Shown: piece after piece, positions 17,850 to 41,242 of the stretch | How positions within the stretch are numbered: position 1 is the first letter of the stretch | Layout of the letters: each line of letters opens with the position of its first letter | DNA from: Amoebophrya sp. A120 | Taxonomy: Eukaryota > Protista > Dinoflagellata | DNA: 64,000 nt | Direction of reading: 5' to 3' | Assembly (NCBI GenBank): GCA_905178155.1 | Contig: CAJINV010000029.1 | Span: forward strand, 106,603-170,602 | Position numbers and translations under genes: made by a program | Notes under the pieces: generated by a model | Database searches by the model: none | Seen by the model: the letters and a program-made list of their open reading frames with translations, nothing else | What the model was told of the DNA's origin: nothing

Positions 17850-18141
17850 TATGAAGATGAAAGATCCCCCGCCCCCATATTGCAAACAAAATCTGTGATG
17901 CTGGATTTGTGTAAGAGTGCAGCATCTAGACTCCTTTGTGTTTCGAATTCGATTTCCGCATTGCAAGCTGCGCTTTTGCATGACAGGCAAGACGCTTATT
18001 TCCTGCTCGCGTATTACAAACTCAGGTGTCATGTGAGATAAGCATGACAAACCTGCAGTCTTCCAGACCCAGACGACATATTTGCAATTCGTAAATCGAT
18101 CTCCGTTGCAATATGGGGAAGGGGGGCTTTTCATCACCATA
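17850..18141. mobile_element. Introner, D-like termini enclosing a family A right half
   Basis: tatgaagatgaaagatcccccgcccccatattgcaa ... ttgcaatatggggaaggggggcttttcatcaccata; DR gtcag/gtcaa. Confidence 0.82.
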
Positions 18142-18189
18142 GTCAAGGGGCGGGAATAGAAGCAAGCGCAAAACAAGGAAGTGAGCGGC

Positions 18190-18532
18190 TATTCATTTCA
18201 AATATGTCTGGGTCTGGAAAAATGCAGTCTTTTGATGCTAAAGAGGTGCGTTGGTTTCGGATTGTGATCCATTTCAAACATTTCTGCTGGCTTCGGATTC
18301 TAAAACATCTGCATTGCATGAGCGGCGCGAAGAGCTTAGTCGTTGCTACGCGGGGAGGGCGTCTCTCATGTGGAACAGGCATCAAGAAGCCCACAAAAAG
18401 ACTGTGACGCTATGTTGGCATACATCACAGACATCAGGCAACATGCAAAATGTGCATGACAAACGTGTTTTCCAAGCAACCAACCAACCAAACACGGCAA
18501 TCTTCCAGACCCAGACGTATTTGCAGTGCATA
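18190..18532. mobile_element. Introner family A
   Basis: tattcatttcaaatatgtctgggtctggaa ... ttccagacccagacgtatttgcagtgcata; DR gcggc/gcagc. Confidence 0.9.
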
Positions 18533-18600: not shown

Positions 18601-21600
18601 ATGCAGCCGTTCTTCGACTTCGGGAGGTACGAGCACGAACACCTGACCAAAGCCGGCATTTCGCTTCAGAACGAGAAGTGGAGACCTCTCTCCGTCCCGG
18701 TGAAATGGATGAGCTTGGCGCAGGGATTGCCCCCCAGGACCGGCGACGCGGTTATGGCTACGAACTTCCGTATCCTCAGCAAAAACGTCTCCTCCCCACC
18801 ATAGATACACCAATGTGAGAACTTTGCTACACAAAGAAAGCCAGGAGGTGGAGCTTTGGGACTCACGCACAAAGAGTTTGCATGTAAAGAAAAAACTTCA
18901 TTACTTTGCAGTTTTTGCATGAGAAATTTTTCTGGCATCAGCAAAGCGCTCTCTTGTATTGCACAAGCACGAGGCAATCACGTCCCTTATGGAGTCTGGA
19001 TGTCATGCATTTGGGCATCGAGAGTTGCGTGACCGTGAGGCATTTTTCTGGGTTGGGGTGAAGGGGACATTTTTCCACAGAGTATTCCTGCTCTGCCGGG
19101 GGCCAGGCATTTCGTCGTGTCGGAGCGTATCAAGTGCAAACATTTCTGCGCCGCCGCCTCTCTGCTACTGGATTACCGACATGGAAATCGCGCAAGAGTA
19201 GCACTGGGACGCATTATACAGTCCTGCTTTCCGATTTGTGCATTACTTGTCATGCATGCCCACCCTCCGAACCAACAAAGGTAAACAGACCTACGTCCTC
19301 GGATCGTGCAGGACAGATGTAAGGGAGCCAGCGCGCCTACAGCTCTTGAAGATCCAATGCATCAAGCAGCAGAAATCTATGCTTCGTGTCTTCAACGGCC
19401 CGGAATTGTTTGCACTGCATAGACCGTTCTTAACGTCCCCCGCTGGTGTGATGATAGCGGCGACTATTTGGAATTTTCCGTGGACCCCACGTGGACCCCA
19501 CCAGACCCAAACCCGGGGAATTCATGCAAAGCGCAGACCGACATCAGGATAGCGGTCAACGGGTCAACCAAGAAGACACCCACCTTCTACTACAATCTCG
19601 CCTCGGAGAGAGGGCGAAAGGGCATGAGAACGCACTACTTCTTGCAGTTCTACTTGGGAAATAAACCGATGGGGATCAACGCGAGGTACAACGACGTGAC
19701 GCGAGCGGACGCATGAAGGTGCACAACTCCCCCTCCCCCTCATTTGTAATAGATGAACGGCAACACAAGCAACGACAGAAATTAGGTTTTCCGCATGACA
19801 AACTGGAACATGGACTGTAGTACTATTTCAGGTTCCGAAATGTGTCATGCAGGGAGTGGCTTGGTCTTGGTGCAGCACCTATTTCTAGCACTCGTTTAAC
19901 CATGACGATACTTGTACTCCCTTACCTTGATACCTTATTGCCTTCTTGTAGGCGCATAGAGAGGAGCTTTCAAGTACTTTTATACATCTGTAAGGCTGTC
20001 GCATGGGGGCGACCTGCCCTGAGACCTCCGATGTCATGCAAGCAGTGCTTCAACATCCACGCTCACGCAGGTGGGGGATTTGCATTTGGTATTTTGCATT
20101 ACAAATGAAGGGGACGGGGAATTGTGCACTCTCATAGGGCGCTGCACTGAAGTACAAGGAGACGGGTGCACCGGTCGACACTGTTTACGTTTCGGCCTTA
20201 AAGTGGGACGAGGCGCGCAAAGGGTATGAGATCGACCAGTCTGTCCCGGTGCAGGTGTTTCGCCCGGTACCGGTTCCCGCCTCCGCTTCGAGCAGCTCGT
20301 CCTCATCATCCCGAAACAGTCACCACCAGCTGGGGGCGGGCGCGGAAGGAAACGTGCTCCAGGGCAAGGGCAGCCAGGCACCGGGGTACTTCGCAAATAC
20401 CGGGCAAAATTACCACGCACAGGTAGGCGGCGGGAGCCAGTTCGATATGCACCGGAAAAATTTGCTCGAGTCCGCCCACTATATCTTGTTGAAAAGTAAT
20501 GCTTTTGATTCGATAAACAAATCAAAAGCATGCTTTTCTTCTTGATATCCATCCAGCAACCCCAGCTCCACGTGGTGCATCAAGCCCCGAGTGCAAGCAG
20601 CTTCGTTCCACCTGCTTCGTGTGGTTTCCCCTCGCACCATTATGGCAGCAGTGTTGCAAGCTTTACCGCGCCACCTCTAGGAGCACACATCGTCTACTAT
20701 CAGGGTAGCGGCTTTGGGGCACCGCAACACACAATGAGCGCACCGCCTGGAGGAGTATATGGTGGCGCCGGCTTTGGAGCACCGCAGCACGCAATCAGCG
20801 CACCACCCGGGCATGCTGGTGCCGGCTTTGGGGCACCGCAACACGCAACGAGCGCACCACCTGGACACGGTGGCACCGCTGTGCCAGACGCGCAGCAGAC
20901 GTTAGCGCAAATTGGTCACCCCGGTCCAGTATGCATTGCAAATATGTCGGGATCTCGGAAAGCGGAACGTGTGGCGCTTCTCTTCCAACCTTCTTCCATT
21001 GCGACACACATGGTTAGCAAATGAAGTGGGCTCATTCAATCACTGCTGTCATGCCTGCTGTTCGTGTAGTGTGAATGTCGTCCGCAAGGTGTGACGATGG
21101 AGAAACAATGGATAAAGCCCGCTCCGCGTGACTGTATTTGCCTGGAAGTGATTCTGCAGCCTGCCATAGTTCAGCTGCAGCGTCACAGGTTGAAGCTCTT
21201 CCGAGACCCCGACATATTTGCATCTGATACCCAGCCAACTACGGTCTTCACCCCGCGCCACAGGCAGGCTTCGGACAAACACCTATGACGTTCTCAGTCG
21301 TTACGCTGGTAGCTGTTTTATGATTCCCCATGCATGAGTAGTGCTTACTGCTACCCTCCCCACTAAGACGCTGTGATGAGTGGCAATTTTTTCTGCTTTG
21401 GTTGTTGCATTGGTAGCTGGTGCGTGATTTGTCATGCAGAACTACTGCCACCCTCACCCTCCACACGATGGAGGTACTTTCTTTGACAGAGGGAGTCCAT
21501 GACTCCAGATCTGTAATGCAAGACGCGGGAGCTTAAGCTTGCTTCCCTCTTCTACTTTTGCTATTAGTCTTTGCATCGCAGATTCATGCAACAGCAGTCA

Positions 21601-24600
21601 CTGTAACGTGTGAGAACCCCATAGCCCTGCAAACGTCGTTCGGGCAGCCCGCTCACAGTCCGCCGGTCTGTGGACAAACGCCGCAGGGTTCTTTTTTCCA
21701 CCCGGGCCAGCACATTGCCTCGTCGATGCCGCAGGAGCACTTCGCGTCCCTATCCAAGGAAAAAGGACCATGGCTACCAGCATTGTCTTTATCTTCTATG
21801 CAAAAACGTCGGCCATGTTTACAAATCCAGCACCGAGGCAGTCGAGGTCATTCCGCGACCTCAATTCGAGGGTCTGCAATACGAAAAACAAATGGTGGCA
21901 AGCTTCAGCGCGGCTACTGATTTTTACGTGTTTCGCGTGTAGATTTTTTTGCGTTTTTGCATGCTGACACGCAGCACGCGTGACAAATCCGATTGATTTC
22001 GGCCACTACGCATTTCCTGTTCCACTCCCACAGCTCGGCTATACATGAGAAACGTGCTAGCTACATCTGTACAGTAGTACTGGTAGATAGTACGCCAGTC
22101 CAGACTTGCACCAGTACGCAAGAGCAGGCTTTTCAGGGTGGTGGTCTTTCTTTTCCGTTTGATGGTCTCCTCCATACAGCTTCAGCAGCCCCGATGCCTC
22201 CCAAGGACCGCCTGAAGCGCAGCGGAAACTCGTATCGAGTGTGCTGGGTCCTGGCCGGCAACCGCAGCTCGATGGACTTGGAAGTGGCAGCGAACAGGAC
22301 CACGCACAGCCACCGGCCCCCGCGGACTTGGCGACAGGACGACTTTCGTTTCGCGAGCCGCCGCAGCAGCCCGCAGCTGGAAATGACACCCACATCACTG
22401 TATCAAACTGAAAAGTGCCCCGAAGCCAGAACGCAAATAAATTGCGTGCGCGGTTTGGCTGGCCTTGGTGGTATGCGCCGTCTCTGACCTACTATGAATG
22501 TGGCATACAGGGAGCGGACTTGTATGTGTGACAAACCGGCCCTGGAGCCGCGCTGCCTAGCAATATTCTGATGCAGCAAGTGCGTTTTTTCATGCTACAG
22601 AGCAGGCACTTGGAATAGAAAAAAGCACCTCGAGGGCAGAGTAGGGGCCGAGGGCTACGGGGCTGGTGAGGTCATAAAACTTACGCATTGCAAAAATGTC
22701 TGGGTCTGGAAGAAGCCAAACTTGTCATGCAAATTCTGGACTACGCAAGAATTCGTGTTGCCTGAAAGCCGAAAGCTGTCCACTTTTTGCTATGCAAGTA
22801 GCAAGTTTCTCATGCAGAATAGGCATCAGGAGACCTGAACGAAACTTGTAATGCTTTTGCGCGCATCCGCATTCCAGAGCATCTGCGTGATCCAAAAGAT
22901 GCATGACAAACTTGCAAAACTCCAGACCCAGACATATTTGCATTTGATAAACTATCCGCAAGGCAAAAGGCCCCGCGTAGATGCAAACAAACCTCTTACT
23001 TTGGCTTTCTGGGGACCGGGCACTTTTCAGCTTGATACAGCCAACCTCCGTCTCGCGGAGCCTCGTCGCTGATACCCCAAGCAGGACACACCGAGCAGCA
23101 GGTGGCTGCCATCGGTGCCGTCCCAAATACCAGCCGGAATTTGCCGACCCCGATTGGACCTGCCCAGCCACCGCAAGACAGTTCACTGGGAGCAGCAGCG
23201 AGCTCCAGTCCACAGCCGCGCCTCCACTCTACCGGGAACAGACCGGAGGATACAAAAGACGAGAACATGCTGCCAGTCGTGGACACGGAGATACAGCAGG
23301 AACCACCGCCACGCCCAGAGGATGTGCCGATTGCGGGGGGACAGCAGCAGGCCTCTGCCAATGCACGACTAGGACAAGAAGGCGCGGCCAAAGTTGTTGA
23401 ACCAGCTGCGCTATCGGATGCAAATTTGTCTGGCTCTGGAAGAATGAGTGTAGATTTTTGCCATCCTGCGTTTGCATGACGCAGAAGGTCGTCGGCCATG
23501 AAAGCCCCAGCGCCACAGATTTAGGCTTTGAGAGGGTTCAGCAATACCTAATCCGCATGACAAATCCCCCGCCATTGTGTGACAAGAAGTGAGCATCTTT
23601 TAGTGCCTATGCATGAGATATTTGATGCGTGTTGTGAAATTAATGCGCGTCACAAGGTCGCACTCTTCCACACCGAGACAAATTTGCATTTGATAAACCC
23701 ATGTCTTGTACCGCAGCAGCGAGCAGCTCAGGGTCATGAATGCGTCAGGCAGCTGGACGGCGGGGGAAAGCTACAACCCAGAAGTTACGCCCGGCATGGA
23801 AGCTAGCGCACGTGGCATCACGCAGGCCGCCATTCCGGACCGGGTACCAAAAGCAAACCAGGCGGCGCCTGCTCAGCGTAAAAAACCGGAAAAAGCAGAT
23901 AGTGCTGGACACGTTCTCGACTATGCATTGCAAATGTGACTGGATCTGGAAAGTTGGAAGCTTGAACTTGTGATGTGTGCATAGGTATATTGGGGGCCCC
24001 CACAAAAAAATGAAAAATCAAAATCTGTCTTGCATCACAGCAAAAAAAAACCCGCCCTTGGACATCCTTGGGGAGGATTTCTAATGCAGGGCGTGCGTCG
24101 CACAGTCCTTAAAGAGCCTGTGACGCTGAACCCTGCCTCCCAGACTTCGCAGGGCGTGGAAAACCTGCATGGCAAATTTGTGTTTCTGTAGTCTTCCAGA
24201 CCCGGACACATTTGCACTCGAGATCGCTGAGAGTTTGGCAATTATCGTAGACGAGGGCAGCGTGGTCGTGGATATATTGCCTTCGCGTTGTGGGGCCACG
24301 CAGCGAACGTTGGCGCGGTCGCGTCGTGTCGGGCGCGTGGATGTTTATCAAGTGCAAATATGTCTGGGTCTGGAAGCTTGTGATGCTAAAGACGTGCTCT
24401 GGAAGCTTGTGATGCTAGAGAGTGCAAATGTGTCTAGGTCTTGTCATGCTTAATACGCATGACAAGCTGCGTCTTTGCATGACGAGAAAGAAGTGCTGCC
24501 TTCTTTGGTGGCTATGCAGTGCCGGTTTTTCAGGAGTGCAAGAGAGACACGCAACACCAATTCCGCTTTTCCAGAACCAGACAAGACATGTCTGCGCTTG

Positions 24601-27600
24601 ATAATATTTACCCGGTGCCAATTTCTACCGTCGATCCCTCTACGGGTACGATTTCGGCCGGACTTGACCCTGTTCGCGATAAGCATCTCATTGAGCTCCT
24701 GGAGCCGGACCGTTCTATGGATTGGGCAGCTGATGACGCAGCTGTGTATGCCGGGCACATCGCCAAAAATACAATCGAAGGAGAACGCGAGGAGGGCGGT
24801 GACACAGCGGTAGACGATTTGGAAACACTCTTTGGCGATGGCGAAGGCGACGCGGTTATCCTCTGCAAAAAAATTCCCCCCGATCCATAGCATTATTTAT
24901 TCGCAGGGCCCAAGAAGAATGTAGCAGCGAATGGCTGTGCCTGCCGTGCTAAAGCGCGGCCTTTTTTGCCGTGCACAGGAGGCGCCCGCGTAGTGTTTGC
25001 CCCGGCTTTGGGACTGAGGCCCGGGGGGCGGCCTTTGGGCTCGATGAGCTTACCAGGCAATGCGCCGCCAGGGTGCTCCGGGGCGAAAAACGCTGCCCCC
25101 CCTTGGCGGCATTTTTTTCTACCCGGTTGTTCGGACAAGGAGCCTGCTTCCAAAAGAGGCGCGGAGAAATAATCAGCCGCCCGGCTCCGCACAAGACGCC
25201 AGCGCCTCCGTTGTGGGCGCTCTTCATTTTTTTCGCAGATTCTTTCCGGCAGGTTTCTGCCGCCGGGATTTCTTTGCTTGCAGCAAAATTGGCCTCCCCG
25301 CAGTGGGTTGCAGAAATCCCGGCCCGCCAAATGGGCGGGCTCAGCAAAGGCCCACCGCTCTAGAGATTCTGGGAGGCGAAATCGGCCTGCCGAAAAAGCA
25401 CAGCGCTCTGGAGGCAGAGCAGAGCCGAAAACGGGCCCGGGCGGGCCGGGCAGCAGTGTGCCCAGCAAGCGGGCCCCCGAAGGGCCCGCGCCCCGGCTCG
25501 GAAAGATGAAAATAAAATAAAAGAAGCGCCGGAAGCGCCCAAATGGTTGCCCATTTCTTTTGGCGCGTGCATTCGGATGCAGCGAGGCCTTTGGGTCTCT
25601 GGATATCATATGTGTAAGTATTGGAGAGCCTTATGGCGGGTGGGAACGGGCTCAGACGATTGGAGCGGGGCCATACATTTTTGCACTGGATGCCGCACTA
25701 TCAAATACGAATATGTCTGGGTCTGGAAGGATGCAGTTTTTGGATTCTAAAAAAATTTGTATTGCATGACTTGCAAGATGAGTCTAGTGCTTGTGCTACG
25801 TGGGGAGAACATGGCTCATGCGGAATAGGTAGCTGAAAGCTCTCCAAAAATCTGTGGCGCATGGGCCATCAGCTGACAGCTCTCCACAAATCTGATGATG
25901 ACCAGTGACGACTGTAAAGCATGACCTTATGCATGACAAAGTTGGCAATCTTCCAGACCCAGACATAGTTGCACTTGATACGCACCAGGCAACGAAAGAC
26001 GCAGCGGAGCGCCGCGCAGCTGCCTATCAAGGAGGTAAAGGCGATGACTTTGATGAAAACAGTGGGGCGGCGGATGTCGGCGGAGCTACAAAACCACTTG
26101 CCGGCGCCACAGACGTGGAGCTGGTCAACGTCTTCGGCGAAGCACCAACAAAGCTGTCATCTTTTCAAGGGCCGGCGCCACCTATCGTCAAGCGATCTAT
26201 CATCCGCCACCTTACCGAGAAGTACGCCGACTTCGGAAAGGGCGAACAGAGTACTCCGACCGGCTGGCACGAGTTCCTGCTTGTTGACGCCGCTGGCACC
26301 CCGCAGAGATACGCCCGGTTCTATTGGTTCAACCCTACGCGCCGCGCGGATGGAAAGAGGGTGCGACTGGCTTGCCCTCTCGTTCACGAGGACGGCTCGG
26401 CTTGCGACGGCGAGCTTCAGCCCTGTCCAAAGGCCGTCCCGTGCCGCTCTCGACCATATGTCGACGTCGGAGAAGACGGCTACGTGACTGGTCCGCAGCT
26501 ACAATGCACCCGCGCCTCTCGGAAGTCTGTGAACGCGTGTCCCGGAGGTATCCAATACAAATGTGGCTGGGTCTGGAAAAGTCGGGGTCTGTCATGCACA
26601 TTTTGCATGACCAGCGAAGTCTGTGATGCAGGTCCTAGCGTGACAGATTTTTTAGAGCCTCTTGATGCTTATCACGCATAAGAAGTGCCTCCTTCGCGTG
26701 CCAAGAATTGGACTCCTTTCGTTGCTCATGCAGCACAGATATTTCTAGAATCCGCAAACAGCACTGCCAGTATTATCTTCCAGACCCAAGCGCGTTTGCA
26801 TTTGATAGTAGGCGGCACGAAACGATTTATGTCTACCGCGGCCAATTTTTTAACTGGGAACAGGCTCGGGGAAGGCCTCGCGTTCGACACGTTTATCCTG
26901 TGGAAAAACGTCCCCGCCCCATGGTTGCCCCATATTTTGGTCTTTCCCAGTACATGGGCACCCCATCGCTGTCATGCAAATGCGCAATGGCAGGGCCATG
27001 CGTAGCGCGCATCTCCATGAGAGGCGTTTCTAGTCGTGTTCTGGCATTTGTAATGCTGTAAACAGGATGAAAAAGTGGCTCTCTCATGCGGCTTACCTTG
27101 CTAACCGCCAGCACTTGTCATGCACAACTACCGAAACCTGGCGACTTGTCTGGCAGATTTCCCATCTTTACTATGGGGCGGGGACGTTTTTACTCAGCAT
27201 AGCGCTCGGAAGTAGTTCTTTGTGTGTTTATAATGGAAACAACTCTTGCACTCGTATAGTTTTGCAAAAAATTACTCCATTACTTAGCTCGCTGCAATGG
27301 AACGCGAGGCATTGCAAGTTAGCTAGTTAGTCACTTCGTCTCCTATACCTAGGTAGCCGTAAGTAAGCATCCTACCTTCCTGATCAACTACCTAAATAGT
27401 CATAATGAGCTAGGGCGAGAAATAACAGTAAGGGCAGCCGGAAGTACGTAGGTTGAGACATAGCCAGTCATGCGCAGCTTCTAGGCGAGCCCGACCTTTC
27501 CGCATTTGTGATGCGGAGAACCGGAGGCGCGGCCTTTCTCCACCCGAGGCCCCGCGGGGAGATGAGCTGGAACTTTGGCAATGCCAAAGCTCCAGTTCCC

Positions 27601-30600: not shown

Positions 30601-33600
30601 CAAGCTGCGAAGCAGATGCGAACTTTGGCGAATTCTTCTGAAGGGCAGCAGGATGCAAGACAGATTTGCACTCTGGGGGATTTTTCCGAAAGGCAGCAAA
30701 AAAGAAAATAAAGAACGATCGCCCTCCTCGGGAGGACTTGGAGACCGATTGGCGGCCTTCTTTTGTTCGTGCTGTCGCCCTGTTTCGCGCCTGCGGTTGA
30801 TCGGTCCGCATTTTCCTTCATCTTTGCGGCCCACGTTAGAACGAAGAGAAAACTTACACCGTGGAGGATTTTTCCGAAGGGCAGCAAGCTGCAAGACACA
30901 GGCGCACTCTGGTGAATTTTTCTGAAGGGCAACAAGCTGCAAGACAGATCCACACTCTGGAAAATTTTTCTGAAGGGCAGCAAGTTGCAAGACGCAGGCG
31001 CATTTGGGTGAATTTTTCTGGAGGGCAGCAAGCTGTGAGACAAATTTGCACTTTGGGGAATTTTTCTCAAGGGCAGCAAGCTGCGAGACAGATGCGCACT
31101 GTGCTGAATTTTTCCGGAGGGGGGGCAGCAAGCTGCCAGGAAGATTCACCCTGTGGGGAATTTTTCTGAAGGGCAGCAAGCTGCAGGACAGCCCTCCACT
31201 TGGGTAATTTTTTCTGAAGGGCAGCAAGCTAGCTGCAAGACAGGTCCCCACACTGGGCAAGTTTTCTGAAGGGCAGGAATCTGCAAGACAGAGTTCCACT
31301 CTGGACAATTTTTCTGAACGGCAGGAAGCTGCGCGACAGATATCCACTCTGGGCGATTTTTCTAAAGGGCAGGAAGCTACGCGACAGGTTTTCACTCTGG
31401 GCAATTTTTCTGATCGGCAGGAAGCTGCAAGACAGATATGCGCTATGGTAAGTGTTTCCGAGGGCAGCAAGCTGCAGGACAGATTTGCACTCTGGTGGGT
31501 GCTTCTGAAAGAAGGGCAGCAAGCTGCGAGACAGACTACCAAGGTGGAGGCCTTGCAGCCCTGCCTAGGTATAAAGCCAGCCGCCCAGTGTCGCGGGCGT
31601 GTTCAAGGCCCGAAGCAGTTTAGCACTTACGTCATGCAAATCGCTCTGCCTGAGCTACTAGCTACTGAATTAAATAAGTTCGCACGCTTCGAAGGTCGCC
31701 AGCTCTTTTGGTTTTTTTTTACTTGGGGGCCTCACTTCTGTGGGCGCCATAGTTGCACCGGAGTCCGGTCCGTCAGAGGTACTCTCGGAACACTGCTCGC
31801 CACTCGCGACAAGCGTATTCTCGGATATGCATTGTTGCCGCGGGAGAGTGCGGAAGCCTTGCTTCCGCTGTTCTCGGGAGTGAAGCAGCGCCACCTCGCC
31901 AGAAACGAGCAACCCCCTGCCTTGATATTATCAAAAGCAAACGTGTCTGGGCCTAAAGGGTTGGAGCTTGTGCCCCTAGTTTTGGGCTGTTGTGCAAAAA
32001 ATCTCCATTGCGTGAGGATGGCGACTGTTGCCATCTGGAGAGGGCATCTGTCATGCGGAATAGGTATCGAGAAGCCCGCAAAAAAAATCTGCGACTTTGT
32101 CATGCGGAACAGGTATCAAGTTCAGGAAGCCTACAAGAAAATCTGTGATGCTAGGGCATGCATCACTGACAGCATGGCTCACGCAACACGTGCATGACAA
32201 ATTTCAGAATCTTCCAGACCCAGACATGTTTGCAGTTGATAGATATTCAACGACAACAATTGCTGCGGCGCACAGTTTCCGTCGCTGACAGGGACCGCCA
32301 CGGGGTCCGACGAATGGCGGCAAGCGGGCGAGCGTTTGACCTGGGGGCATGCGTGGCAGGCTTTGGGAGTGAAGTACAGCAAGGGGGACATCTTCCACGC
32401 AGCGCGGCGGATCTTGCGAGTCTGCTCCACCAGCAAGCGACACGAACAGTACGGCGCCTTGTGCGCAATGGTAAACTCGGCTTTCTTATCACCTGCCAAG
32501 ATGTCTGGGTCTGGAGCTGCATGAAAAGCATCGATATGGCTGGGCTGCACATGTATGCGCTCTGCGCGACTCGGTTTGTCGTGCGGAGTGCATACATGTG
32601 CAGCCCAGACATATTCATGCTTTTCATGCAGCTCCAGACCCAGACATGTTTGCAGCCCATAATTTCTGGTTGCGGACCCGGAGCGGGCGGCGGGCTTGGC
32701 CAGGGAGCTCGGCAGGGACCCGACCAACCGGGACCTCCGGGAGCATTGCGACCGCATTGCCCCGGGGGGGGCCGTCGTGTGGGAGCGGCTCAAGCGGTGC
32801 GTCCGCTATGAATTGCAAAAGTATCGCGCTACGCAATACAATGGCCATGGATATGGCATAGGCAAGGCATTGAGGTGGATAAGTATAAAGCAGAGCCCGC
32901 AGCATATCACTCACATAAATTAATAAAGCGCGCAAGATAGACAAAGGATAAAAGTGAAAAAGCGGAGGCTTTCAGTGGTATTGACATAGCTACGCGCTTA
33001 ATATCGTAAGTGTTGGACTTTGAACACACCGGCCACACTGAGTGACTAAAGCTTCTACCCAGTAGGTCTCTCAATCAGCTCCAGCACTTCAATCTCTCAG
33101 CAGACAGGGCGAAAGCCTCTGGCTGTGTTGCATCCTGTAAAGGGAAGTCATTCAAATTCATCAGCAAACTGTGACCCGGGCGGGGTCAGAGTCAAGTGCC
33201 TAAGCAGCATGGGAGTACCTCCCTCAATGATGTCGGTTTAGTGCTCGACCCTGGCGGGAGTCAACCCCCTCAGGATGGTCATTCTGAACTTCTAGACCGA
33301 GCGGAGTCCCTTCATTTCACTCCGATCGTGATGGCTTTGCCTTCGTAGTATTTGGAGGATTCGGGTCAAATGGTGAAGAGGTTCCTTTAGGATCTAGCTA
33401 GTTCAGGTCATTTCGGCCTATCATTTCACTGGGAGCAGGCAACTCGGACCATCTTCAGAAGCTCCAGACATGGTTGTGAGAGGATTCTGATCACATGGCC
33501 AACAATAAGAGGCAATGGCGGAAAGCGCAAAAATGGAAAGAGATAGATAGCAAAAGGCTGAGACATCTGGGAAATGCCAACGCTTGAAACGTAGCGCACT

Positions 33601-36600
33601 CCCATAACCGCAGCACGGATCTCCTCAGCGTGAGAAGTTACGTCTTTGCTTCGGGCTTACTTTAAGAAAAAGACTGGTAGGCGCATGATTGTAGTTATTA
33701 CGAGTGCGATACTTTTGCGCAGGATGTCCGTTACTTCCTGACAACTCCGGGCCAGTCCACACAGACTGCGGCGCTGGACAAGGCGATATATGAATTGCAA
33801 ACATCTCTGGGCCAGGCAGGGCGCAAGGCCTGCCGCGCAGGTTTTCCGTTCTGTGGTGCGATCCCTGTCATGCCTCCCCTCGGTCTGAAGCTCCCGCGCA
33901 ACTTCATCAGAGAAAAGCAGGCAACTTTTTGCAATCATTCAAGCAGCGCAGATTTTTGCATGATCCAGCGGTCGCTAGGCGTCGATCTGCAGCTCCGCCC
34001 TCTTAGGTTCCCCATGGCCCTCCCTTTCCGCTTCTGGAAAGTGAAATAGTCAGCGCACTAGGTGTGCTTTCTTTTGCTTGGTATGTTTTTATTTTTGTTC
34101 TGGGCTTGTTTATTTTGCTATGCTTATTGTTGTATTTCCCTTGGAGCCTCTTGAGCTCTTTCAGACCCAGAGAGATTTGCAGTGCATAGGCCCATTTACC
34201 AGGCACTGGTGCAGCTCCGGCGGCACTGCCTCAACGGGTGCTTCGAAGATGTCCCGGCCAATGCTCTCACCGGCGGCCCACTGGTGGAGCAGGATAAAAG
34301 TGGAAAGTTTATTTCTTCCCGGGGAACGCCCTGCGTATCCAGTGCAAAGAATGCGTCTGGGTCTGGAAAAGTGCAATGCTCCTTGTCGTGCTCGGCTAGT
34401 AAGACTCTCTCCAGTCTGTCGAGCGCGTTAATTGCCGAAAAGTCACACTTTTCTTTCATGCAGTGAAGCTCTTCGTCATGATGCAGAATGGGCACCGCTT
34501 TGGATAGAAGCGCAGAAGCTTGTCACTCGGAGGTTAGAACAAGCTCAGAAAATTGCTATGCAAAGCCCCATGTTGCTATGCCACTCCGCATTGCGTCAAG
34601 TTTCCAGACCTAGACAAATTTGCAATGCATATTGGGTGGAGAGTTACAATTGCGAGGCCAACCAGATCGACGACCACCACTCAAAGACGCCGGACGGTTA
34701 CGGCCACCGCCTCCGAGCTCTCAACTTCGGGTGGAATTTCCGCCGTGTCCTCGGATGGAAGTCGCGCGACGTTCTCGTCCTGAATGTGGAGCTCATGCGG
34801 TTGGCTCTGCTCGAAGGTTACCCCGCGGCAGACCTCGCGTTCTGGGGGTACTTGTTGGAGACGCCAACACCAGCACAGCCCGTGGAGGTCTTTGGCGCGG
34901 ATTACCTTTCCGCGCAGTACAATGGTCCCGGTTTGATTTGTGAGCCAGCACCGGCAGACCGTATGCGTTGTAAATGTGTCTGGGTCTGGGAGGGCCCGAG
35001 CTTGTCATGCTAAGTCTGGATTGTAAGTGCAAAAATTTGTGTTGCATGACTACCAGCAAAAGCTGTCCACTTTTGAACAAGTTTAGAGGCAGTTTCTCGT
35101 GCAGGGTAGGCATGATAGAGACGTCGCAGAACCTGTCATGCTAGGTTCTTCATTCGAAACATCATGGGGCATGGAAAATCTGCATCACAAGTTTGCACTC
35201 TTCCAGACCCAGACATATTTGCAATCCATAGACCGCCCAGGTCCGGCACCTTCATCCTCCTCATCCTCCTCTGTCCGAAAGCCGCTGCTTCAAGCCGTTC
35301 CGGAGATAGGCCCGGCACCTTCGTCCTCCTCGTCCTCGTTTGTCCGAAAGCCCCTGCGTGAAGCCGTTCTGGAGGTAGCCCCGGCATCTTCATCGTCCTC
35401 GTCCTTTGTCCGAAGGCCGCTGCGTGGAGCCGTTCTGGAGATAGGCCCGGCACCTTCATCCTCGTCCTCGTTTGGTGTTCGTCCGCCGGAGATAGGGAAG
35501 CGAGCCGTCTCGCTCGTGACACTTGCTGGCCCCGAGCCCACAGTGTCGACGGCAGGCGCATCTGGGTCTGCGCGCACAGTATCGAAGTGAAATGTGTCTG
35601 GCTCTGGAGCGGTTGCGCCCGTTTTGCATGTCCCGCACTCCCGAGAAACCTGTATGGCGTGGAACAGCAAGACCTAGCGTCGCGATTTCCATTGCCATTC
35701 AGAGCACAACTTGTGATGCGTTCTGTGCATGAAAAAGCGATGGAGAAAAAGTTTATTTGTCATGCTTCCGGGAACTGAGAGCTGAATCGTGGCCATGCAG
35801 CTCGCAAGCGCCCAGACCCAGACACATTTCTAATGCATACACAGATGCCGAGGTGGATGCGTCACCTCCTGCTGCTACCGAGGTGGAAGCTTCTGTGGAG
35901 GTGGATCCCAGTGACATGCTGGACGACCAAATTTTTCCTCCGCAAATTATGACCGACGACAGTGCAGCCGCTGCTGTGCCCTCCGCGGGCGGCATTGTTT
36001 GGCCTCGGAGAAACCGCGCGGCAAAGGCAGCAGTCGCACCCACGACTGCTGGTTCGAACGAACTCGCCAAGGGCTCGAAGCTTGGGACAATCAAAGCGAA
36101 CTACGCCGCCAAAAACAAGCCCCCGCGAGTACTTCCCTTCGCGGCCACTTCCAAGAGACGGAAACTATCCGAACCGAGTCAGGAAGACCTCGATCTGGAT
36201 GGAAGCCTCGAGGGCGACGCCTTTTGCGTGTATGAATTGCAAAAGTGTCTGGGTCTGGAAGATTGGAACTTGTCATGCTAAAGCCAAATCATGCAAAAAT
36301 CTGTGTTGCATGACTGCCAAAAGCTGTTCTCCTTCGACCAAGTTGGGAGGGAGTTTCTCACGCAGGATAGGCATGACAGAGACCTCACAGACTCTGTTAC
36401 GCTAGGCCCTGCATTCCAAGCCTCATGGGGCATGGAAAATATGCATGAGAAGTTTGCAATCTCCCAGACCCAGACATATTTGCATTTGATATCGCGGACA
36501 TGGCGACACTTTGCGACCAAAAGCAGGCAGATGAAGCAGGACCGAACAAGCCGAAAATTGATGTAGATCGCGTTCTGGAGCTCGCGAACATCGGTGGCGG

Positions 36601-39600
36601 TGCTGACCTGTCGGACATGGATGCCGGAAGTGAGCCGAACGCAAGCAGCAGCTCTGTGGCTTTACCTGCTAACACGCACCGGGTTGCGGTTGTTTCTGGC
36701 GTGGAAGTATCAAATGCAAACATATCTGGGTCTGGAAGAGAAACGCAGACATTTGCCATGTTGTTTTTGCATGACGCAAAAGGTCTCTCATGTAAGCCCT
36801 AGCATCACAGATCTCGAGAACCTTCCGCAGACGCAATGCCCAATCCGCATGAGAAAGCCTCTATTTTGGTGACAGGAAGTGGGCGCCTTTTGCTGCCTAT
36901 GCGTGAGAGTTTTTTGTGTGTAGTTGCGAAATGCGCTGCACAAGTTCGCATCTTTCCAGACCCAGACACATTTGCAATTGATAGGAAGCTGCGTCAGCGC
37001 CAGGTGGAAGCTTTAGCTTTGGGGTTGAGAACATACAAGGCCCGGCCCCTGCAAAGTCCCCGCTTCCTGTTACAACGATGCCCACGGTGGCCGCTTCGCT
37101 GAAAAGGCCGGCCGCTCTGGTTGCGGGCAGTCCGAGTGCCGCCAAAAAACAGCAGGACCCGAAGAAGATATCCGCTGCAAATGATATATTTCGGTCTGGA
37201 CGATAAAAGAAAAAGCTGCAACTTGTCATGCGAAGGCACAACCCCAAAAAAACTTTGTATAAACGCCAAAAGATGTAGATGCCCCGTTGCCGTTTCTGCT
37301 AGGCAAGGGGCGGATTTACCATGCGGAACAGGCATCACGAAAGTCCCGCAGAGTCTGTGACGCTTCTGTTCGCATTCCAGACCATGGCTGTGGTCCACGG
37401 GATGCATGACAAATCCTGCGCTCTTCCAGACCCAGACGAATTTGCATTGGATACAAAACGAAAGTACACAACGACTACGCTTTCATCTCGCACGGCATGC
37501 AGATGCCGCTGGACCCTATGAAACACCCGGAGGTCGCGAAAATACTTCGGGAACTAGTGCAGGCGGACATGGCTCTTATGAATGACGCTAAGGCGCTCTA
37601 CGTGGAGTACATGAAACGAAGCACCGCCGGCCCGCACACGAAACTCCCCGGAACGAATGAGAAGATGATTGGCTTTTGGTTGAAGGAACAGTTCAAAGGC
37701 GACAACCGCGAAACGCCGAAGGCACGTTTTACAATCTTCGGCACGCGCTTTCACAAAGACCCCCACGGTATGGGTATGAACGGACAAAATACAACTTGGC
37801 CCCAATGCGACCATATGGCGCCACGAGAATGTCGCCGCTGGCTCCGAAGGCCGCCGCTGGCGCCGGGGCCGCCACTGACTTCTCAAGCCGCCGCTGGCTC
37901 GGAAAACCGCCGCTGGCCCGCCGGCCGCCGCTGGCGCCGGGGCCGCCGCTGACTTCTAGGCCGGCCCGCCGCTGGCTCGGAAAACCGCCGCTGGCCCCCT
38001 GGCCGCCGCTGGCGCCGGGGCCGCCGCTGACTTCTAGGCCGGCCCGCCGCTGGCTCGGAAAACCGCCGCTGGCCCCCTGGCCGCCGCTGGCGCCGGGGCC
38101 GCCGCTGACTTCACGGGCCGCCGCTGGCCCGGAAAACCGCCGCCGCTGGCCCCCTGGCCGCCGCTGGCGCCGGGGCCGCCGCTGACTTCGCAGGCCGCCG
38201 CTGGCCCGGAAAACCGCCGCTGGCCCCTTGGCCGCCACTGGCGCCGGGGCCTCCGCTGACTTCTCCGGCCGCCGCTGGCATGGAAAAGAAGCCGCCGCTG
38301 GCGCCGGGGCCGGCCGCCGCTGACTTCGCAGGCCGCCGCTGGCTCGGAAAACCGCCGCTGGCCTCGCGGCCGCCGCTGGCGCCGGGGCCGCCGCTGACTT
38401 CACAGGCCGCCGGGGCCAGCGGCGGTTTTCAAAACCGCCGCTGGCCCCCTGGCCGCCGCTGGCGCCGGGGCCGCCGCTGACTTCGCAGGCCGCCGCTGGC
38501 TTGGACAACCGCCGCTGGCCCCCGGGCCGCCGCTGGCGCCGGGGCCGCCGCAGACTTCTCAGGCCGCTGGCTCGGAAAACCGCCGCTGGCCCCCTGGCCG
38601 CCGCTGGCGCCGGGGCCGGCCGCCGCTGATTTCTCAGGCCGCCGCTTGCTCGGAAAATAAAACGCCGCTGGCCCCCTGGCCGCCGCTGGCGCCGGGGCCG
38701 CCGCTGACTTTCCAGGCCGCCGCTTGCCCGGAAAATAAAAACCGCCGCTGGCCCCTTGGCCGCCGCTGGCGCCGGGGCCGCCGCTGACTTCTCAGGCCGC
38801 CGCTGGATTGGAAAAGCGCCGCTGGCCCCCTTGCCGCCGCTGGCGCCGGGGCCGGGGCCGGCCGCCGCTGCCCTCTCAGGCCGCCGCTGGCTTGGAAAAC
38901 CGCCGCTAGCGCCGGGGCCGCCGCTGGCTTCTCAGGCGGGCCCGCCGCCGCAGGCCCGGAAATAAAACCGCCGCTGGCGCCGGGGGGGGCCGCCGCTGAT
39001 TTCCGAGGCCGCCGCTGGTTTGAAAAACCCACCGCCGATGGCCCCCTGGCCGCCGCTGACGCCGAAGGCCGCCGCTGGCTCGGAAAACCGCCGCTGGCCC
39101 CCTGGCCGCCGCTGGCTACAGAAAGTGAAAGCGAGAGGCCTCCGCCGGCGCCAGGGCCGCCGCTGGCGCCAAGGCAGGCCGCCACTGGCTCCCCAGACCG
39201 ACCGCCGCTGCTGGCCCGCAGCGAGCGCTCAGGCCGTCTACGATCCGTAGACAGCCTGAACGGCCGTGAGGGTATATCGTGAAGTCGTGAAATGCAGTAG
39301 GAGGAGGCGCGGCACAAACAGAGAACTTTTGAAGTTCCTGGATGTGTCATGCGCGCCAGAGGGGGGCGGGAACCCAAACCCATTGCGTTTCCACGCTACC
39401 GGGCACCCACGGCGCTGGGTATTGGGTTGGGAAAGATTCCTCCCCACCCAATGGGTGGAGAAGCAACCGTTTGGTGATTCGTTTTTTTTTTTGAAATTCC
39501 AAGCGGCTTGCTCTCCATCCTCTTGGTGCGGAAAGATTCCTCCCCGCCCAATGGCTGGAGAAAAAGCCGCGTCGGAATTTATTCGCTCTGTTTTGAATTT

Positions 39601-41242
39601 CCGAGCGGCGTTCTCACCAGCCGACTGCTGGGGAAAGATAAAGCAGGCCGCTTTGCGAATTTGTAGTGCGGTTCTTCGCCACCCAGGGTGGCGAAAAACT
39701 GCGAAAAACCCCCGAGGCCCCCTCCCCCCCCCCCTGAAAAGTGAAGCCTCTACCCCGTCCGGGACGGGAAAAATTGGGAGCGGGCGGAGCCCCATGTGCT
39801 GCGTCATTCCCGTGCGCCGCTCGTTCCCGTGGCACTCATATGTGCTCGCATTCCTGTAGGTCAGGTCGTATTTTGTCCGTTCATATCCCACGGCGCACCC
39901 AGTACGGGAGGCGCAGCCGTGCAGCCGCCCGAGAACCGGGAACAGCTGGCGCAGAAAGTTCAGGGAAGTTCAGCCGCCTCGGGCGCCGCTGCGAAAAGGG
40001 ACACGGCGAGCCTCGGCACGGGCTCGAAGGGGGCGAACCAGGCAGCGGCCGAACCGAACAGCTTGGGCAGCTCTACGAACGCTGGGCAGCCGGCTGGCGA
40101 AACCAGTGCTGCAGCTAAGTGGTCCCGCTGCAAAAAATGCGAAATGAAGAAACCGGAGTGGTACGACAAAAAAATTGGACTGACGAACCAGATAGACATC
40201 CCCGCGATGGTCCGTAGGGTTCAGGATGCCGGGAACAATTTCTTTCAAGGAGGCAAGGGAATGTGTGTGCAGTGTATTTGGCACAAGGCGAAACAGCCGC
40301 CGTACGATTTCGCGAAAGACGACTACAGCGGCTTTAACACGACCCGGACGGCCGTTCTGAAAACCGCAGGAACACCCACCTGCCTGCTGACGCGTTTGGC
40401 CCAATACATCGAGTACGCAGTGCAAGAGTCAACGTGTCTGGGTATCTCTGGAAGACTGAGACATGTGATGCTGGATGCGGATTCTAAAAAAGTCTGTGTT
40501 GCATGAGCAGCAAAAGGAGTCCAATTCTTGCTACCTGGGCAGAGCAGTTTTCATGTGTGATAAGCATGAAGAAGCTCTAAGAAAATCTGTGATGCTAGGA
40601 CCTGCATAGCAGACCTCACGGGACATGCAAAAAGTGCATGACATTGTTCCAGACCCAGACGCAAACGCATTTGCATTTGATATCGACGACCGTGCCCGTG
40701 CAGCAATTGTTCCGCCGCCAGCGCAACCACCTGCGGGCACAAACGTTATCGTCGGACAGAACGCTCCTGCACCCGCAGGGCCGCAATTCCGTGCAACTAT
40801 TCCTCAGCCAGAAAACACGTCCGGCAAGTATTGCCGGGCCAAGGAGACAGCACCGGGAAACGCGTGCACGAAGAAGCCCGCTGATGCTCCTTTGGTGTGG
40901 CATTGGAGTTTCTTGGTGCCGGGCGAGAAGGTGCCGCCGGCCTTCGACCTGTGTAGCCGCTGCAGATTTCACCGCACGCTGCGCGACATCATCGACGCGT
41001 CCGCGGATGGCGCCCCGGGTGCGGTTCTGGAGACCCTGCTGCAGAAGGTCCGCGAGTGCCACCCAAATGCTGACCATTCTCGATTCCCCTCGCCTACTCG
41101 CCAGGACGTTGCGAAGCTCGAGACTTTTGCTAGAGGCGACACACCTGCGCAAGGGTACGATGCGAAAAGATGGGCAAAACACAAACGGGCGCAGCGGGAG
41201 GTCATCTGGCAGCAGTACCAGAACTGCTTGCGGCAATGGTAG
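18601..41242 (+). CDS. Large DDE transposase (DUF6729-like domain, DxxH-type core), 2,367 aa, 30 exons: 18601-18770, 19090-19127, 19427-19711, 20142-20445, 20553-20929, 21235-21283, 21629-21750, 22170-22400, 23043-23411, 23701-23921, 24229-24345, 24609-24856, 25698, 25986-26548, 26813-26893, 27207-27228, 28746-29069, 31757-31928, 32247-32486, 32667-32806, 33732-33788, 34194-34335, 34637-34961, 35236-35579, 35845-36230, 36497-36707, 36989-37168, 37459-37768, 39894-40413, 40688-41242 (left DR copy kept by convention)
   Basis: Removing each element plus 5 nt keeps one stop-free frame over 29 junctions; total 7,104 nt, divisible by 3. Ordered motifs FYWFNP..LACP..C, GEAVSWDCT, RILGYALL..PPALIFNDNNCC, KGDIFHAARRI, DLREHCDR, RGTPCVES, GWN, EVFGADYL. 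Start codon uncertain (first ATG after in-frame TAG at 18157). Confidence 0.88.
18771..19084. mobile_element. Introner family D (transposase intron 1)
   Basis: tatcctcagcaaaaacgtct ... ggggacatttttccacagagta; DR ttccg/ttcct. Confidence 0.88.
19128..19421. mobile_element. Introner, A-like (intron 2)
   Basis: tatcaagtgcaaac ... gtttgcactgcata; DR gagcg/gaccg. Confidence 0.85.
19712..20136. mobile_element. Introner family E (intron 3)
   Basis: catgaaggtgcacaactcccc ... ggggaattgtgcactctcata; DR ggacg/gggcg. Confidence 0.88.
20446..20547. mobile_element. Short 102-bp introner-like intron (intron 4)
   Basis: tatgcaccggaaaaa ... ttttcttcttgata; DR decayed; frame restored. Confidence 0.65.
20706..20870 (+). 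repeat. Coding repeat, 3x GFGAPQHxxSAPPG
   Basis: Visible in ORF 20530..21024. Confidence 0.85.
20930..21229. mobile_element. Introner family A (intron 5)
   Basis: tatgcattgcaaatatgtcggg ... cccgacatatttgcatctgata; DR tccag/cccag. Confidence 0.9.
21284..21623. mobile_element. Introner family B (intron 6)
   Basis: tatgacgttctcagtcgttac ... gtaacgtgtgagaaccccata; DR decayed. Confidence 0.85.
21751..22164. mobile_element. Introner family H (intron 7)
   Basis: tatccaaggaaaaaggacc ... ggtctttcttttccgtttgatg; DR gtccc/gtctc. Confidence 0.8.
22401..23037. mobile_element. Introner family G with nested A (intron 8)
   Basis: tatcaaactgaaaagtgccc ... gggcacttttcagcttgata. Confidence 0.88.
22682..22949. 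mobile_element. Introner family A nested in G
   Basis: tacgcattgcaaaaatgtctgggtctgga ... tccagacccagacatatttgcatttgata. Confidence 0.9.
23412..23695. mobile_element. Introner family A (intron 9)
   Basis: tatcggatgcaaatttgtctggctctggaa ... gacaaatttgcatttgata; DR lost (tgcgc/aaccc) but frame restored. Confidence 0.88.
23922..24223. mobile_element. Introner family A (intron 10)
   Basis: tatgcattgcaaatgtg ... cacatttgcactcgaga; DR tcgac/tcgct. Confidence 0.87.
24346..24603. mobile_element. Introner family A (intron 11)
   Basis: tatcaagtgcaaatatgtctgggtctggaa ... gcgcttgata; DR atgtt/atatt. Confidence 0.9.
24857..25692. mobile_element. Bloated family D introner with GC-rich insert (intron 12)
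   Basis: tatcctctgcaaaaaaattcccc ... catttttgcactggatg; right end inferred from terminal similarity and frame. Confidence 0.7.
25699..25980. mobile_element. Introner family A (intron 13)
   Basis: Family A termini; perfect DR cgcac. Confidence 0.92.
26549..26807. mobile_element. Introner family A (intron 14)
   Basis: Family A termini; DR ggagg/gtagg. Confidence 0.9.
26894..27201. mobile_element. Introner family D (intron 15)
   Basis: tatcctgtggaaaaacgtccccgcccc ... ggggcggggacgtttttactcagcata; DR acgtt/gcgct. Confidence 0.92.
27229..28740. mobile_element. 1.5-kb introner containing a family F hairpin module (intron 16)
   Basis: tataatggaaacaactct ... agagttgtcccttttcccgttata; DR gtgtt/gtgcg; frame restored. 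Confidence 0.78.
27480..28620. mobile_element. Family F right-end hairpin array, nested
   Basis: Repeated cgccacccgaggggtggcg and gagcggga..ctggaac..gttccag..cccgctc hairpins; terminus ttgtattttgtccgttcata. Confidence 0.85.
29070..31751. mobile_element. 2.68-kb satellite-filled introner (intron 17)
   Basis: tatgaggtcctcag ... gggcgccata; DR actgc/gttgc; removal yields SWDC-TGVRSVRG in frame. Confidence 0.8.
29150..31530. repeat. 48-bp satellite in inverted (foldback) arrangement
   Basis: Forward blocks 29150-29455 and 29900-30185, reverse blocks 30200-30700 and 30860-31530; ~130-bp spacer duplicated at 29770-29900 and 30722-30852. Confidence 0.92.
31929..32241. mobile_element. Introner family A (intron 18)
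   Basis: Family A termini; perfect DR gatat. Confidence 0.92.
32487..32661. mobile_element. Fully palindromic family A introner (intron 19)
   Basis: The two halves are near-perfect reverse complements; DR tttct/atttc. Confidence 0.9.
32807..33726. mobile_element. Family C introner with ~760-bp foreign insert (intron 20)
   Basis: tatgaattgcaaaagtatcgc ... gcgatacttttgcgcaggatg; DR tccgc/tccgt. Confidence 0.88.
33789..34188. mobile_element. Introner, A-like (intron 21)
   Basis: tatgaattgcaaacatctctggg ... cccagagagatttgcagtgcata; DR lost (cgata/ggccc) but frame restored. Confidence 0.85.
34336..34631. mobile_element. Introner family A (intron 22)
   Basis: Family A termini; DR ctgcg/ttggg; splits RGTPC from VES. 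Confidence 0.9.
34962..35230. mobile_element. Introner family A (intron 23)
   Basis: Family A termini; perfect DR gaccg. Confidence 0.93.
35243..35475 (+). repeat. Coding repeat, about 4x PAPSSSSSSxVRKPLxxAVxEI
   Basis: Visible in ORF 35099..35590; roughly 69-bp period. Confidence 0.85.
35580..35839. mobile_element. Introner family A (intron 24)
   Basis: Family A termini; perfect DR cacag. Confidence 0.92.
36231..36491. mobile_element. Introner family A (intron 25)
   Basis: Family A termini; DR gcgtg/tcgcg; body similar to 34962 copy. Confidence 0.92.
36708..36983. mobile_element. Introner family A (intron 26)
   Basis: Family A termini; perfect DR ggaag. Confidence 0.93.
37169..37453. mobile_element. 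Introner family A (intron 27)
   Basis: tatccgctgcaaat ... atttgcattggata; DR gaaga/caaaa. Confidence 0.88.
37769..39888. mobile_element. Complete 2.12-kb family F inverted-repeat element (intron 28)
   Basis: tatgggtatgaacggacaaaatacaac ... gtcgtattttgtccgttcatatcc; perfect DR cacgg; removal fuses ORFs 37497 and 39796 (KDPHG-APSTGG). Confidence 0.87.
37830..39235. repeat. GC-rich satellite built on gccgccgctgg inside the family F element
   Basis: Dozens of ccgccgctg(g/a) subunits in a ~75-80-bp higher-order unit. Confidence 0.93.
40414..40682. mobile_element. Introner family A (intron 29)
   Basis: tacgcagtgcaagag ... catttgcatttgata; DR tcgag/tcgac. Confidence 0.88.

Follow-up and report, generated by a model that had tools for sequence, protein, structure and literature searches.

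Positions 18601 to 41242 on the + strand of the stretch analysed here, a 64,000-nt window of contig CAJINV010000029.1 of the dinoflagellate Amoebophrya sp. A120 (all coordinates are counted from the first nucleotide of the window), carry one gene with an open reading frame (ORF), spread over 22.6 kb and divided into 30 exons by 29 introner introns. These introns are insertions of non-autonomous transposons with terminal inverted repeats (TIRs) and a 5-bp target-site duplication (TSD). The frame opens at ATG 18601, closes at TAG 41240-41242 and, when every element is deleted together with 5 nt, gives a coding sequence of 7,137 nt (2,378 amino acids and a stop codon) with no internal stop. On the 5' side of the gene, an in-frame stop lies at 18157-18159 and there is no earlier ATG. 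It is moderately probable that the locus is, taken as a whole, one real, single-copy protein-coding gene on this strand, split by introners, maintained by the host and encoding a DDE core of the Mutator clan of transposases.

The reading frame and the splice rule

The elements were located by their inverted ends, through reading of the sequence and a scan for TIRs, independently of the frame, and 29 of them lie between 18771 and 40682. They were curated one by one; automatic chaining of inverted-repeat candidates made long false jumps. The frame dictated by the lengths of the elements is open in 30 of 30 exons. Of the 25 exons that reach 60 nt, 14 have no other open frame and most of the rest have just one other. 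Deleting the elements with 0, 1, 3, 4 or 6 additional nucleotides leaves 33 to 38 stops in the joined exons in each case, while an offset of 2, whose frame class is identical to that of 5, leaves none. About five boundaries were picked with the frame known (20482 over 20480, 33789 over 33787, 19712, 32661 and those of intron 7); with these allowed for, the probability of an open joined frame arising by chance is roughly 1e-6 or less. The GC content at third codon positions is 0.65-0.70 in the exons, as against a GC content of 0.53 in the introns. Apart from about 11 codons, the gene model is robust.

Introns 12 and 13 deserve a separate mention. Their two elements stand 6 nt apart, leaving a formal exon of 1 nt at 25698, and they effectively form one composite intron of 1,128/1,129 nt, so that removal must be sequential or must take out the composite as a whole. 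The element at 25699-25980 is inserted into, or beside, the target-site copy of the first (24857-25692).

A preliminary description of this DNA had proposed that removing each inverted-repeat element plus 5 nt at 29 junctions yields a stop-free frame, and computing the spliced product reproduced this, with neither a stop nor a frameshift. The length it gave (7,104 nt, 2,367 amino acids) falls 11 residues short of ours, intron 7 (21751-22176) being the likeliest source of the difference. The codons it had named for the catalytic residues, 29064 (D), 32252 (D) and 34639 (E), are the same here, with residue numbers that are 8 higher. Those of its protein motifs that are contained in one exon all lie on the + strand where it had placed them, and PPALIFND and RGTPCVE straddle junctions, as it implied. 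The gene model also supports its contention that a long ORF interrupted in this manner would be overlooked by ORF finders and by models based on GT-AG. Finally, it called all 29 introns non-canonical. This holds for 24, whose element boundaries lack G[T/C]..AG; for introns 2, 3, 14, 23 and 26 there is a second reading as a G[T/C]...AG intron made of the element plus 2 nt (GC..AG in intron 3), with the frame unchanged.

Introner ends, duplications and proposed removal

Nearly all 29 elements open with TAT[C/G] and close with [C/G]ATA, the exceptions being one that starts with TAC, two with TATA ends and four with one degenerate end (CAT, AGA or ATG). The terminal inverted repeats are clear in 28 of the 29. 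At least 17 elements form family 1, with the TIR TATSNNNTGCAAAYRTGTCTGGGTCTGGAAG, and two or three form family 2, with the TIR TATCCTSWGSAAAAACGTCCCC; the remainder belong to other families, the 4-nt termini being common to all. The smallest has 66 nt and the largest 2,682 nt, the commonest size lying near 260-300 nt. Five sites in the gene have perfect 5-nt TSDs (CGCAC, GATAT, GACCG, CACAG and GGAAG) and eight match at 4 of 5 positions. Overall, 91 of 145 TSD positions match (63%), when about 36 would be expected by chance. At nine sites identity is only 0 to 2 of 5, and several termini are degenerate. Since many TSDs have decayed and several termini have degenerated, many of the insertions are old. 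Elsewhere in the genome, family-1 copies show a perfect 5-bp TSD beside TAT[C/G]...[C/G]ATA in 14 of 15 cases, and a search with the translated intron 14 element gave more than 5,000 first-look candidate places, with 147 scored matches. A short way upstream of the start codon are two further introner copies, at 17865-18095 and 18190-18532; a TAG at 18157-18159 closes the frame 5' of the second.

The 7.1-kb frame was invaded 29 times by such elements, mostly of about 260 nt, each making a 5-bp TSD. We propose that in the pre-mRNA the inverted ends would pair into a long hairpin, bringing the exon ends together. The element and 5 nt would then be cut out, five cases allowing instead the G[T/C]..AG intron mentioned above. 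Intron 23, the one intron that was folded, is predicted to form a single long hairpin in which the first base pairs with the last (-115.9 kcal/mol, z = -6.1). Hairpin-aided removal is the process published for the non-canonical introns of Amoebophrya. Strain A120 has 66,565 introns with RNA-seq evidence, of which more than 60% are non-canonical, with inverted repeats of 8-20 nt and direct repeats of 3-5 nt at their boundaries (PMC7789003), and tens of introner introns have been reported in a single A120 gene (PMC12130899). The elements of the present gene resemble these introners (PMC7789003, PMC9860276, PMC12130899) in the hairpin-forming inverted repeats at the intron ends, the short direct boundary repeats, the general lack of GT-AG, the length of about 240-300 nt, the thousands of copies and the many introns per gene. 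The intron type is thus already known, and nothing about the introns themselves appears new. One difference concerns the 2021 paper, in which the repeats were variable and without a family-specific motif (PMC7789003), whereas a sharp rule emerges here: TAT[C/G]...[C/G]ATA across several families, a 5-bp TSD, and an intron equal to the element plus 5 nt.

Insertion into a 5-mer target that starts and ends with G creates a GT..AG intron, or a GC..AG one, of the form G|TAT...ATA|G, and such targets offer a simple way for a non-canonical introner to become canonical. A canonical GT-AG model of the whole gene was rejected: it is possible at some junctions (e.g. 26548..26808), but in ten introns no G[T/C]-AG lies in frame within 15 nt. 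The two giant introns are packed with tandem or foldback satellites, namely a unit of about 48 nt in inverted arrays at 29145-31540 and a GC-rich unit at 37900-39250; the 2-kb bin with the latter unit reaches 70.5% GC. The long ORFs of the large introns contain no Pfam domain.

A candidate DDE core in the central block

The protein would consist of long disordered arms and a central block covering residues ~900-1540. Residues ~200-900 and 1541-1914 are of low complexity, and the C-terminal 460 residues hold CxxC pairs. Within the central block, a Cys-rich segment (exon 14) is followed by a DDE-like series of motifs in the order ..VSWD(1181)CTGVRSVRGTLGTLLATRDKRILGYALLPRESAEALLPLF..PPALIFND(1242)NNCC..KGD(1287)IFH(1290)AARRI..DLREHCDR..RGTPCVE(1434)SYN..FGWN..EVFGADYL, which would represent a DDE domain of the Mutator clan (MULE/IS256-like, (C/D)(2)H-type). 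The MULE domain has the pattern D-x-T, hydrophobic run, E-S, h-h-x-D, (C/D)xxH, and exons 17 to 19 follow this consensus, with D-x-T ... E-S ... h-h-x-D ... (C/D)xxH. In the spliced model, and at the level of motifs, D1287xxH1290 sits 45 residues after D1242, and D1242 and E1434 are 192 residues apart. In MULE and hAT transposases a (C/D)(2)H motif occurs 15-45 residues past the second Asp (PMC5499845); judged by its motifs, the central block thus has the putative D, D, E triad together with a candidate (C/D)(2)H.

The likeness to Mutator-like (MULE / IS256 clan) transposases extends to the order D, D, (C/D)xxH, E, to the D-x-T at the first Asp, to the E-S-x-N at the Glu and to the position of the Cys-rich segment upstream of the catalytic core. 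Unlike these enzymes, the locus gives no significant match to a profile hidden Markov model (HMM) with any exon, the distance from the second Asp to the Glu is longer than in typical MULEs, and the protein is far larger, with long low-complexity arms. A loose regular expression of the signature, written after the sequence had been seen, matched 5 of 3,000 composition-preserving shuffles (0.17%). In the ESM Atlas, exon 19, which carries the second Asp and DxxH, had Mutator-like transposase clusters as its neighbours, PF20700 (0.90) at the top, followed by PF20700, PF20700 and PF00872, with PF10551 lower; its ten best matches, out of 7.7 million clusters, all fall in one clan. The score may be due to chance, but a match to the very family that had been predicted beforehand is much less likely to be so. 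The presence of a Mutator-clan DDE domain in the central block is plausible and, on this evidence, quite probable.

Several results weigh against the reading given at the outset, either as to the core or as to the gene as a whole. Homology searches were run exon by exon, and profile searches of the genome on the 115,520,608-bp assembly. Pfam gave nothing at E <= 10 beyond noise for 20 exon segments, PDB searches with three exons gave only noise, no homologous proteins were found for exons 19, 23 and 30, and phmmer with exon 14 returned 0 matches among 1.84 billion representative proteins. The HMMs of PF10551 (MULE) and PF20700 (Mutator) found nothing anywhere in the genome, and that of PF20499 (DUF6729) found nothing at the locus. 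The Atlas match of exon 19 has 147 shared features, where 170 are typical for true family members, and a low recognition value (1636); in calibration, shuffled proteins scored 0.9 in 4-10% of cases. Exon 23 gave a weak Atlas match (0.84) to DnaQ-type exonucleases. As for the gene model, the TIR of the intron 7 element is the weakest and six alternatives compatible with the frame exist there, and the register of the cut has 6 possibilities per intron. Three RNA-seq runs under the same species label, together with contigs from a fourth whose RNA nature is only guessed, gave on 31700-37699 only repeat-derived pieces on the elements, with no exon coverage or junction reads. In the fourth run, the contigs cover only introner termini (32100-32299, 35100-35299 and 36100-36499, depth ~90-110), which fits abundant repeat-derived RNA or DNA from other copies.

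The blank searches with exons are weak evidence, since the core is cut into seven exons (17 to 23) of 18-108 amino acids; with the DDE domain so divided, single exons would be undetectable. A metagenome scan with exon 23 gave no match, and part of exon 14, modelled by AlphaFold2 on the single sequence without an alignment, had a pLDDT (predicted local distance difference test) of 41.7. The preliminary description had spoken of an intact transposase. For this stand the intact long ORF, the D..D..DxxH..E order with a spacing of the (C/D)(2)H type and the lead given by exon 19 in the Atlas; against it stands the lack of a profile, PDB or homologue match per exon. It also linked DxxH to the MULE/hAT/P/Kolobok-type group of DDE enzymes. 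The parallel it drew with DUF6729 proteins is not supported: the likeness consists only of the motif parallels listed there, the PF20499 HMM is empty at the locus, and exon 14 has no match in Pfam or in the protein collection searched. Genome-wide, in six frames, PF20499 gave a single weak match (E = 0.5) in an unrelated Cys-rich ORF on another contig. This spurious match is a 284-residue ORF with CxxC pairs (ORF 1312-2166 of C1:11983672-11986836).

Copy number, maintenance and mobility

The gene is single-copy, with one locus and one duplicate contig (C133, 4,635 bp), which is 99.5% identical to 24642-29276, in reverse orientation, contains all the same introners and probably represents an assembly duplicate or a haplotype that was not collapsed. 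The two differ at 22 positions, 19 in introns and 3 in exon 14 (K908Q and two synonymous changes), counts too low to be tested. No specific pair of inverted repeats brackets the gene, and none related to the introners does. The locus thus has neither the TIRs and TSD of its own nor the several copies of an autonomous DNA transposon. Because it is single-copy, lacks terminal repeats of its own and has large extra regions, it is most likely a host-maintained gene derived from a transposase, either domesticated or a relic sole copy, into which introners inserted as they did into neighbouring genes, and not a multicopy autonomous transposon. Domesticated derivatives of Mutator-like elements include FAR1/FHY3 and MUSTANG, and the present gene is like domesticated copies in being single-copy and without TIRs.

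That the frame is still open after the decay of many TSDs speaks for selection, and also for the elements being removed from the mRNA; we infer that the spliced product is under purifying selection. A gene maintained, rather than dead, is favoured by indirect evidence, to which the higher GC content of the exons and the scarcity of exon differences from C133 also belong. The opposite possibility, that a former ORF was recently riddled with insertions, has not yet decayed and retains its elements, accords with the lack of transcript evidence, but it is highly improbable: the low TSD identity and the degenerate termini indicate that many insertions are old, a neutral frame of 7.1 kb would not stay open for so long, and it is mostly in introns that the two copies differ. 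A more serious alternative, though an unlikely one, is that a real introner-split gene encodes an orphan, fast-evolving protein unrelated to transposases, the motif pattern and the Atlas match being due to chance. The absence of sequence or HMM homology at the exon level, an Atlas calibration that permits chance scores of 0.9 and a signature defined after the sequence had been seen all speak for it, and Amoebophrya proteins have been reported to be fast-evolving (PMC7789003). What tells against it is that the family was predicted from the motifs first and that an independent method then placed exon 19 in the same clan, in addition to the MULE pattern of exons 17 to 19 and the rarity of the signature among shuffled sequences.

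One may also ask whether the gene encodes an active transposase that mobilizes in trans the introners with TAT[C/G] ends and 5-bp TSDs, in which case the gene would rely on their being removed from its own mRNA. The genome paper reported no transposase in strain A120 and argued against a transposase-driven spread of the non-canonical introns (PMC7789003); the locus is the sole Mutator-like candidate seen, the MULE and Mutator HMMs having found nothing else in the genome. Its candidate catalytic residues appear intact, perfect TSDs show that introners have recently been active, and the 4-nt termini do not differ between the families in the gene, as would be expected with a single enzyme. Yet MULE and hAT transposases make TSDs of 8-10 bp (PMC5499845) and the elements around these exons 5 bp, the gene lacks introner-related TIRs, and no sign of expression came from the RNA runs described above, the fourth only guessed to be RNA. 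Moreover, at least 30 integrase (rve) loci exist in the genome, among them a recently active long terminal repeat (LTR) element with 5-bp TSDs, and integrase-like ORFs have been published inside TIR-flanked introner families of A120 (PMC12130899); both are alternative sources of an activity generating 5-bp TSDs. We regard such an active enzyme as improbable.

The LTR retrotransposon in question is 7.06 kb long and occurs at C1:15597500-15605500, C2:4741512-4748565, C8:3694608-3701653 and C18:1071906-1078958. It has LTRs that are identical along at least 300 nt, one ORF of 1,980 amino acids with an rve integrase domain, the ends TATGAC...TTCACA and the TSDs GATGG, GTTTA, AGGGT and ATTCA. At least four copies are 98.7-99.7% alike, and its recent activity is deduced from the near identity of copies and LTRs. 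This multicopy 7-kb integrase element had been considered as an autonomous source of introners and was rejected, being an LTR retrotransposon. In twelve further 10-kb stretches around rve matches, no family-1 TIR pair was found to bracket an integrase ORF.

The coordinates of exons and introns are collected in the table below. Downstream of the gene lies a diverged tandem duplication (43585-43909 versus 46625-46971, ~77% identity).

Table. Exons and introner introns of the gene, all on the + strand, in window coordinates
Feature	Position	Content	TSD, TIR or boundary
Exon 1	18601..18770		
Intron 1	18771..19089	element 18771-19084, family 2, TATCCTCAGCAAAAACG..., + 5 nt	TSD TTCCG/TTCCT 4/5
Exon 2	19090..19127		
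Intron 2	19128..19426	element 19128-19421, family 1, + 5 nt; GT..AG also possible	TSD GAGCG/GACCG 4/5
Exon 3	19427..19711	sole open frame	
Intron 3	19712..20141	element 19712-20136, CATGAAGGTGCAC.../...GTGCACTCTCATA, left end degenerate, + 5 nt; GC..AG also possible	TSD 4/5
Exon 4	20142..20481	sole open frame	
Intron 4	20482..20552	66-nt hairpin element 20482-20547 + 5 nt	start chosen over 20480 with frame known
Exon 5	20553..20929	GFGAPQH..SAPPG repeats; sole open frame	
Intron 5	20930..21234	element 20930-21229, family 1, + 5 nt	TSD TCCAG/CCCAG 4/5
Exon 6	21235..21283		
Intron 6	21284..21628	element 21284-21623 + 5 nt	TIR TATGACGTTCTCA/TATGGGGTTCTCA
Exon 7	21629..21750		boundary uncertain
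Intron 7	21751..22181	element 21751-22176 + 5 nt	weakest TIR
Exon 8	22182..22400		
Intron 8	22401..23042	element 22401-23037 + 5 nt; nested family-1 copy 22682-22949	TIR score 20/30
Exon 9	23043..23411	sole open frame	
Intron 9	23412..23700	element 23412-23695, family 1, + 5 nt	
Exon 10	23701..23921	sole open frame	
Intron 10	23922..24228	element 23922-24223, family 1, right end degenerate (GAGA), + 5 nt	TSD TCGAC/TCGCT 3/5
Exon 11	24229..24345		
Intron 11	24346..24608	element 24346-24603, family 1, + 5 nt	TSD ATGTT/ATATT 4/5
Exon 12	24609..24856	sole open frame	
Introns 12 + 13	24857..25985	elements 24857-25692 (+ 5 nt) and 25699-25980 (family 1, + 5 nt)	second TSD CGCAC/CGCAC 5/5
Exon 14	25986..26548	Cys-rich segment, residues 853-1039: FYWFNP, VRLACP, RPYVDV, LQC	
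Intron 14	26549..26812	element 26549-26807, family 1, + 5 nt; also GT..AG 26548..26808	TSD GGAGG/GTAGG 4/5
Exon 15	26813..26893		
Intron 15	26894..27206	element 26894-27201, family 2, + 5 nt	TIR score 22/30
Exon 16	27207..27228	22 nt	
Intron 16	27229..28745	1,512-nt element 27229-28740, internal palindromic repeat, + 5 nt	TIR TATAATGGAAACAACTCT / TATAACGGGAAA..ACAACTCT
Exon 17	28746..29069	ends ..GEAVSWDC; candidate catalytic D1181 = codon 29064-29066	
Intron 17	29070..31756	2,682-nt element 29070-31751, foldback of ~48-nt satellite repeats, + 5 nt	
Exon 18	31757..31928	TGVRSVRGTLGTLLATRDKRILGYALLPRESAEALLPLF..PPALI	
Intron 18	31929..32246	element 31929-32241, family 1, + 5 nt	TSD GATAT/GATAT 5/5
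Exon 19	32247..32486	candidate D1242 (codon 32252-32254, FNDNNCC) and D1287-x-x-H1290 (KGDIFHAARRI)	
Intron 19	32487..32666	175-nt element 32487-32661, family 1 (short), + 5 nt	perfect TTTCT repeat 1 nt off would break frame
Exon 20	32667..32806	DLREHCDR	
Intron 20	32807..33731	920-nt element 32807-33726, right end degenerate (GGATG), + 5 nt	TSD TCCGC/TCCGT 4/5
Exon 21	33732..33788		
Intron 21	33789..34193	element 33789-34188, family 1, + 5 nt	TSD decayed 1/5
Exon 22	34194..34335	..SSRGTPC	
Intron 22	34336..34636	element 34336-34631, family 1, + 5 nt	TSD 3/5
Exon 23	34637..34961	candidate catalytic E1434 (codon 34639-34641, CVESYN), FGWN, EVFGADYL; sole open frame	
Intron 23	34962..35235	element 34962-35230, family 1, + 5 nt; also GT..AG 34961..35231	TSD GACCG 5/5
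Exon 24	35236..35579	repeats GPAPSSSSSSFVRKPL..	
Intron 24	35580..35844	element 35580-35839, family 1, + 5 nt	TSD CACAG 5/5
Exon 25	35845..36230	sole open frame	
Intron 25	36231..36496	element 36231-36491, family 1, + 5 nt	TIR score 20/30
Exon 26	36497..36707	sole open frame	
Intron 26	36708..36988	element 36708-36983, family 1, + 5 nt; GT..AG also possible	TSD GGAAG 5/5
Exon 27	36989..37168	sole open frame	
Intron 27	37169..37458	element 37169-37453, family 1, + 5 nt	
Exon 28	37459..37774	C-terminal region begins; sole open frame	
Intron 28	37775..39890	2,111-nt element 37775-39885, GC-rich tandem repeats inside, + 5 nt	18-nt perfect TIR TATGAACGGACAAAATAC
Exon 29	39891..40413	CxxC..CxxC segment; sole open frame	
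Intron 29	40414..40687	element 40414-40682, family 1, + 5 nt	TSD TCGAG/TCGAC 4/5
Exon 30	40688..41242	ends in TAG 41240-41242	

A DDE core cut into seven such short exons would escape both the domain searches made on assemblies and gene models based on GT-AG. If the Mutator-like reading is true, the gene provides a concrete and testable transposase candidate in a genome reported to have none; if, beyond this, the enzyme were active, it would overturn the published view that A120 has no transposase and that a transposase-mediated spread of its introns is ruled out. Even if the gene is a domesticated relic, the rule of TAT[C/G]...[C/G]ATA termini with a 5-bp TSD predicts the frames of 29 junctions correctly, and this rule could serve to re-annotate hidden genes across the genome.

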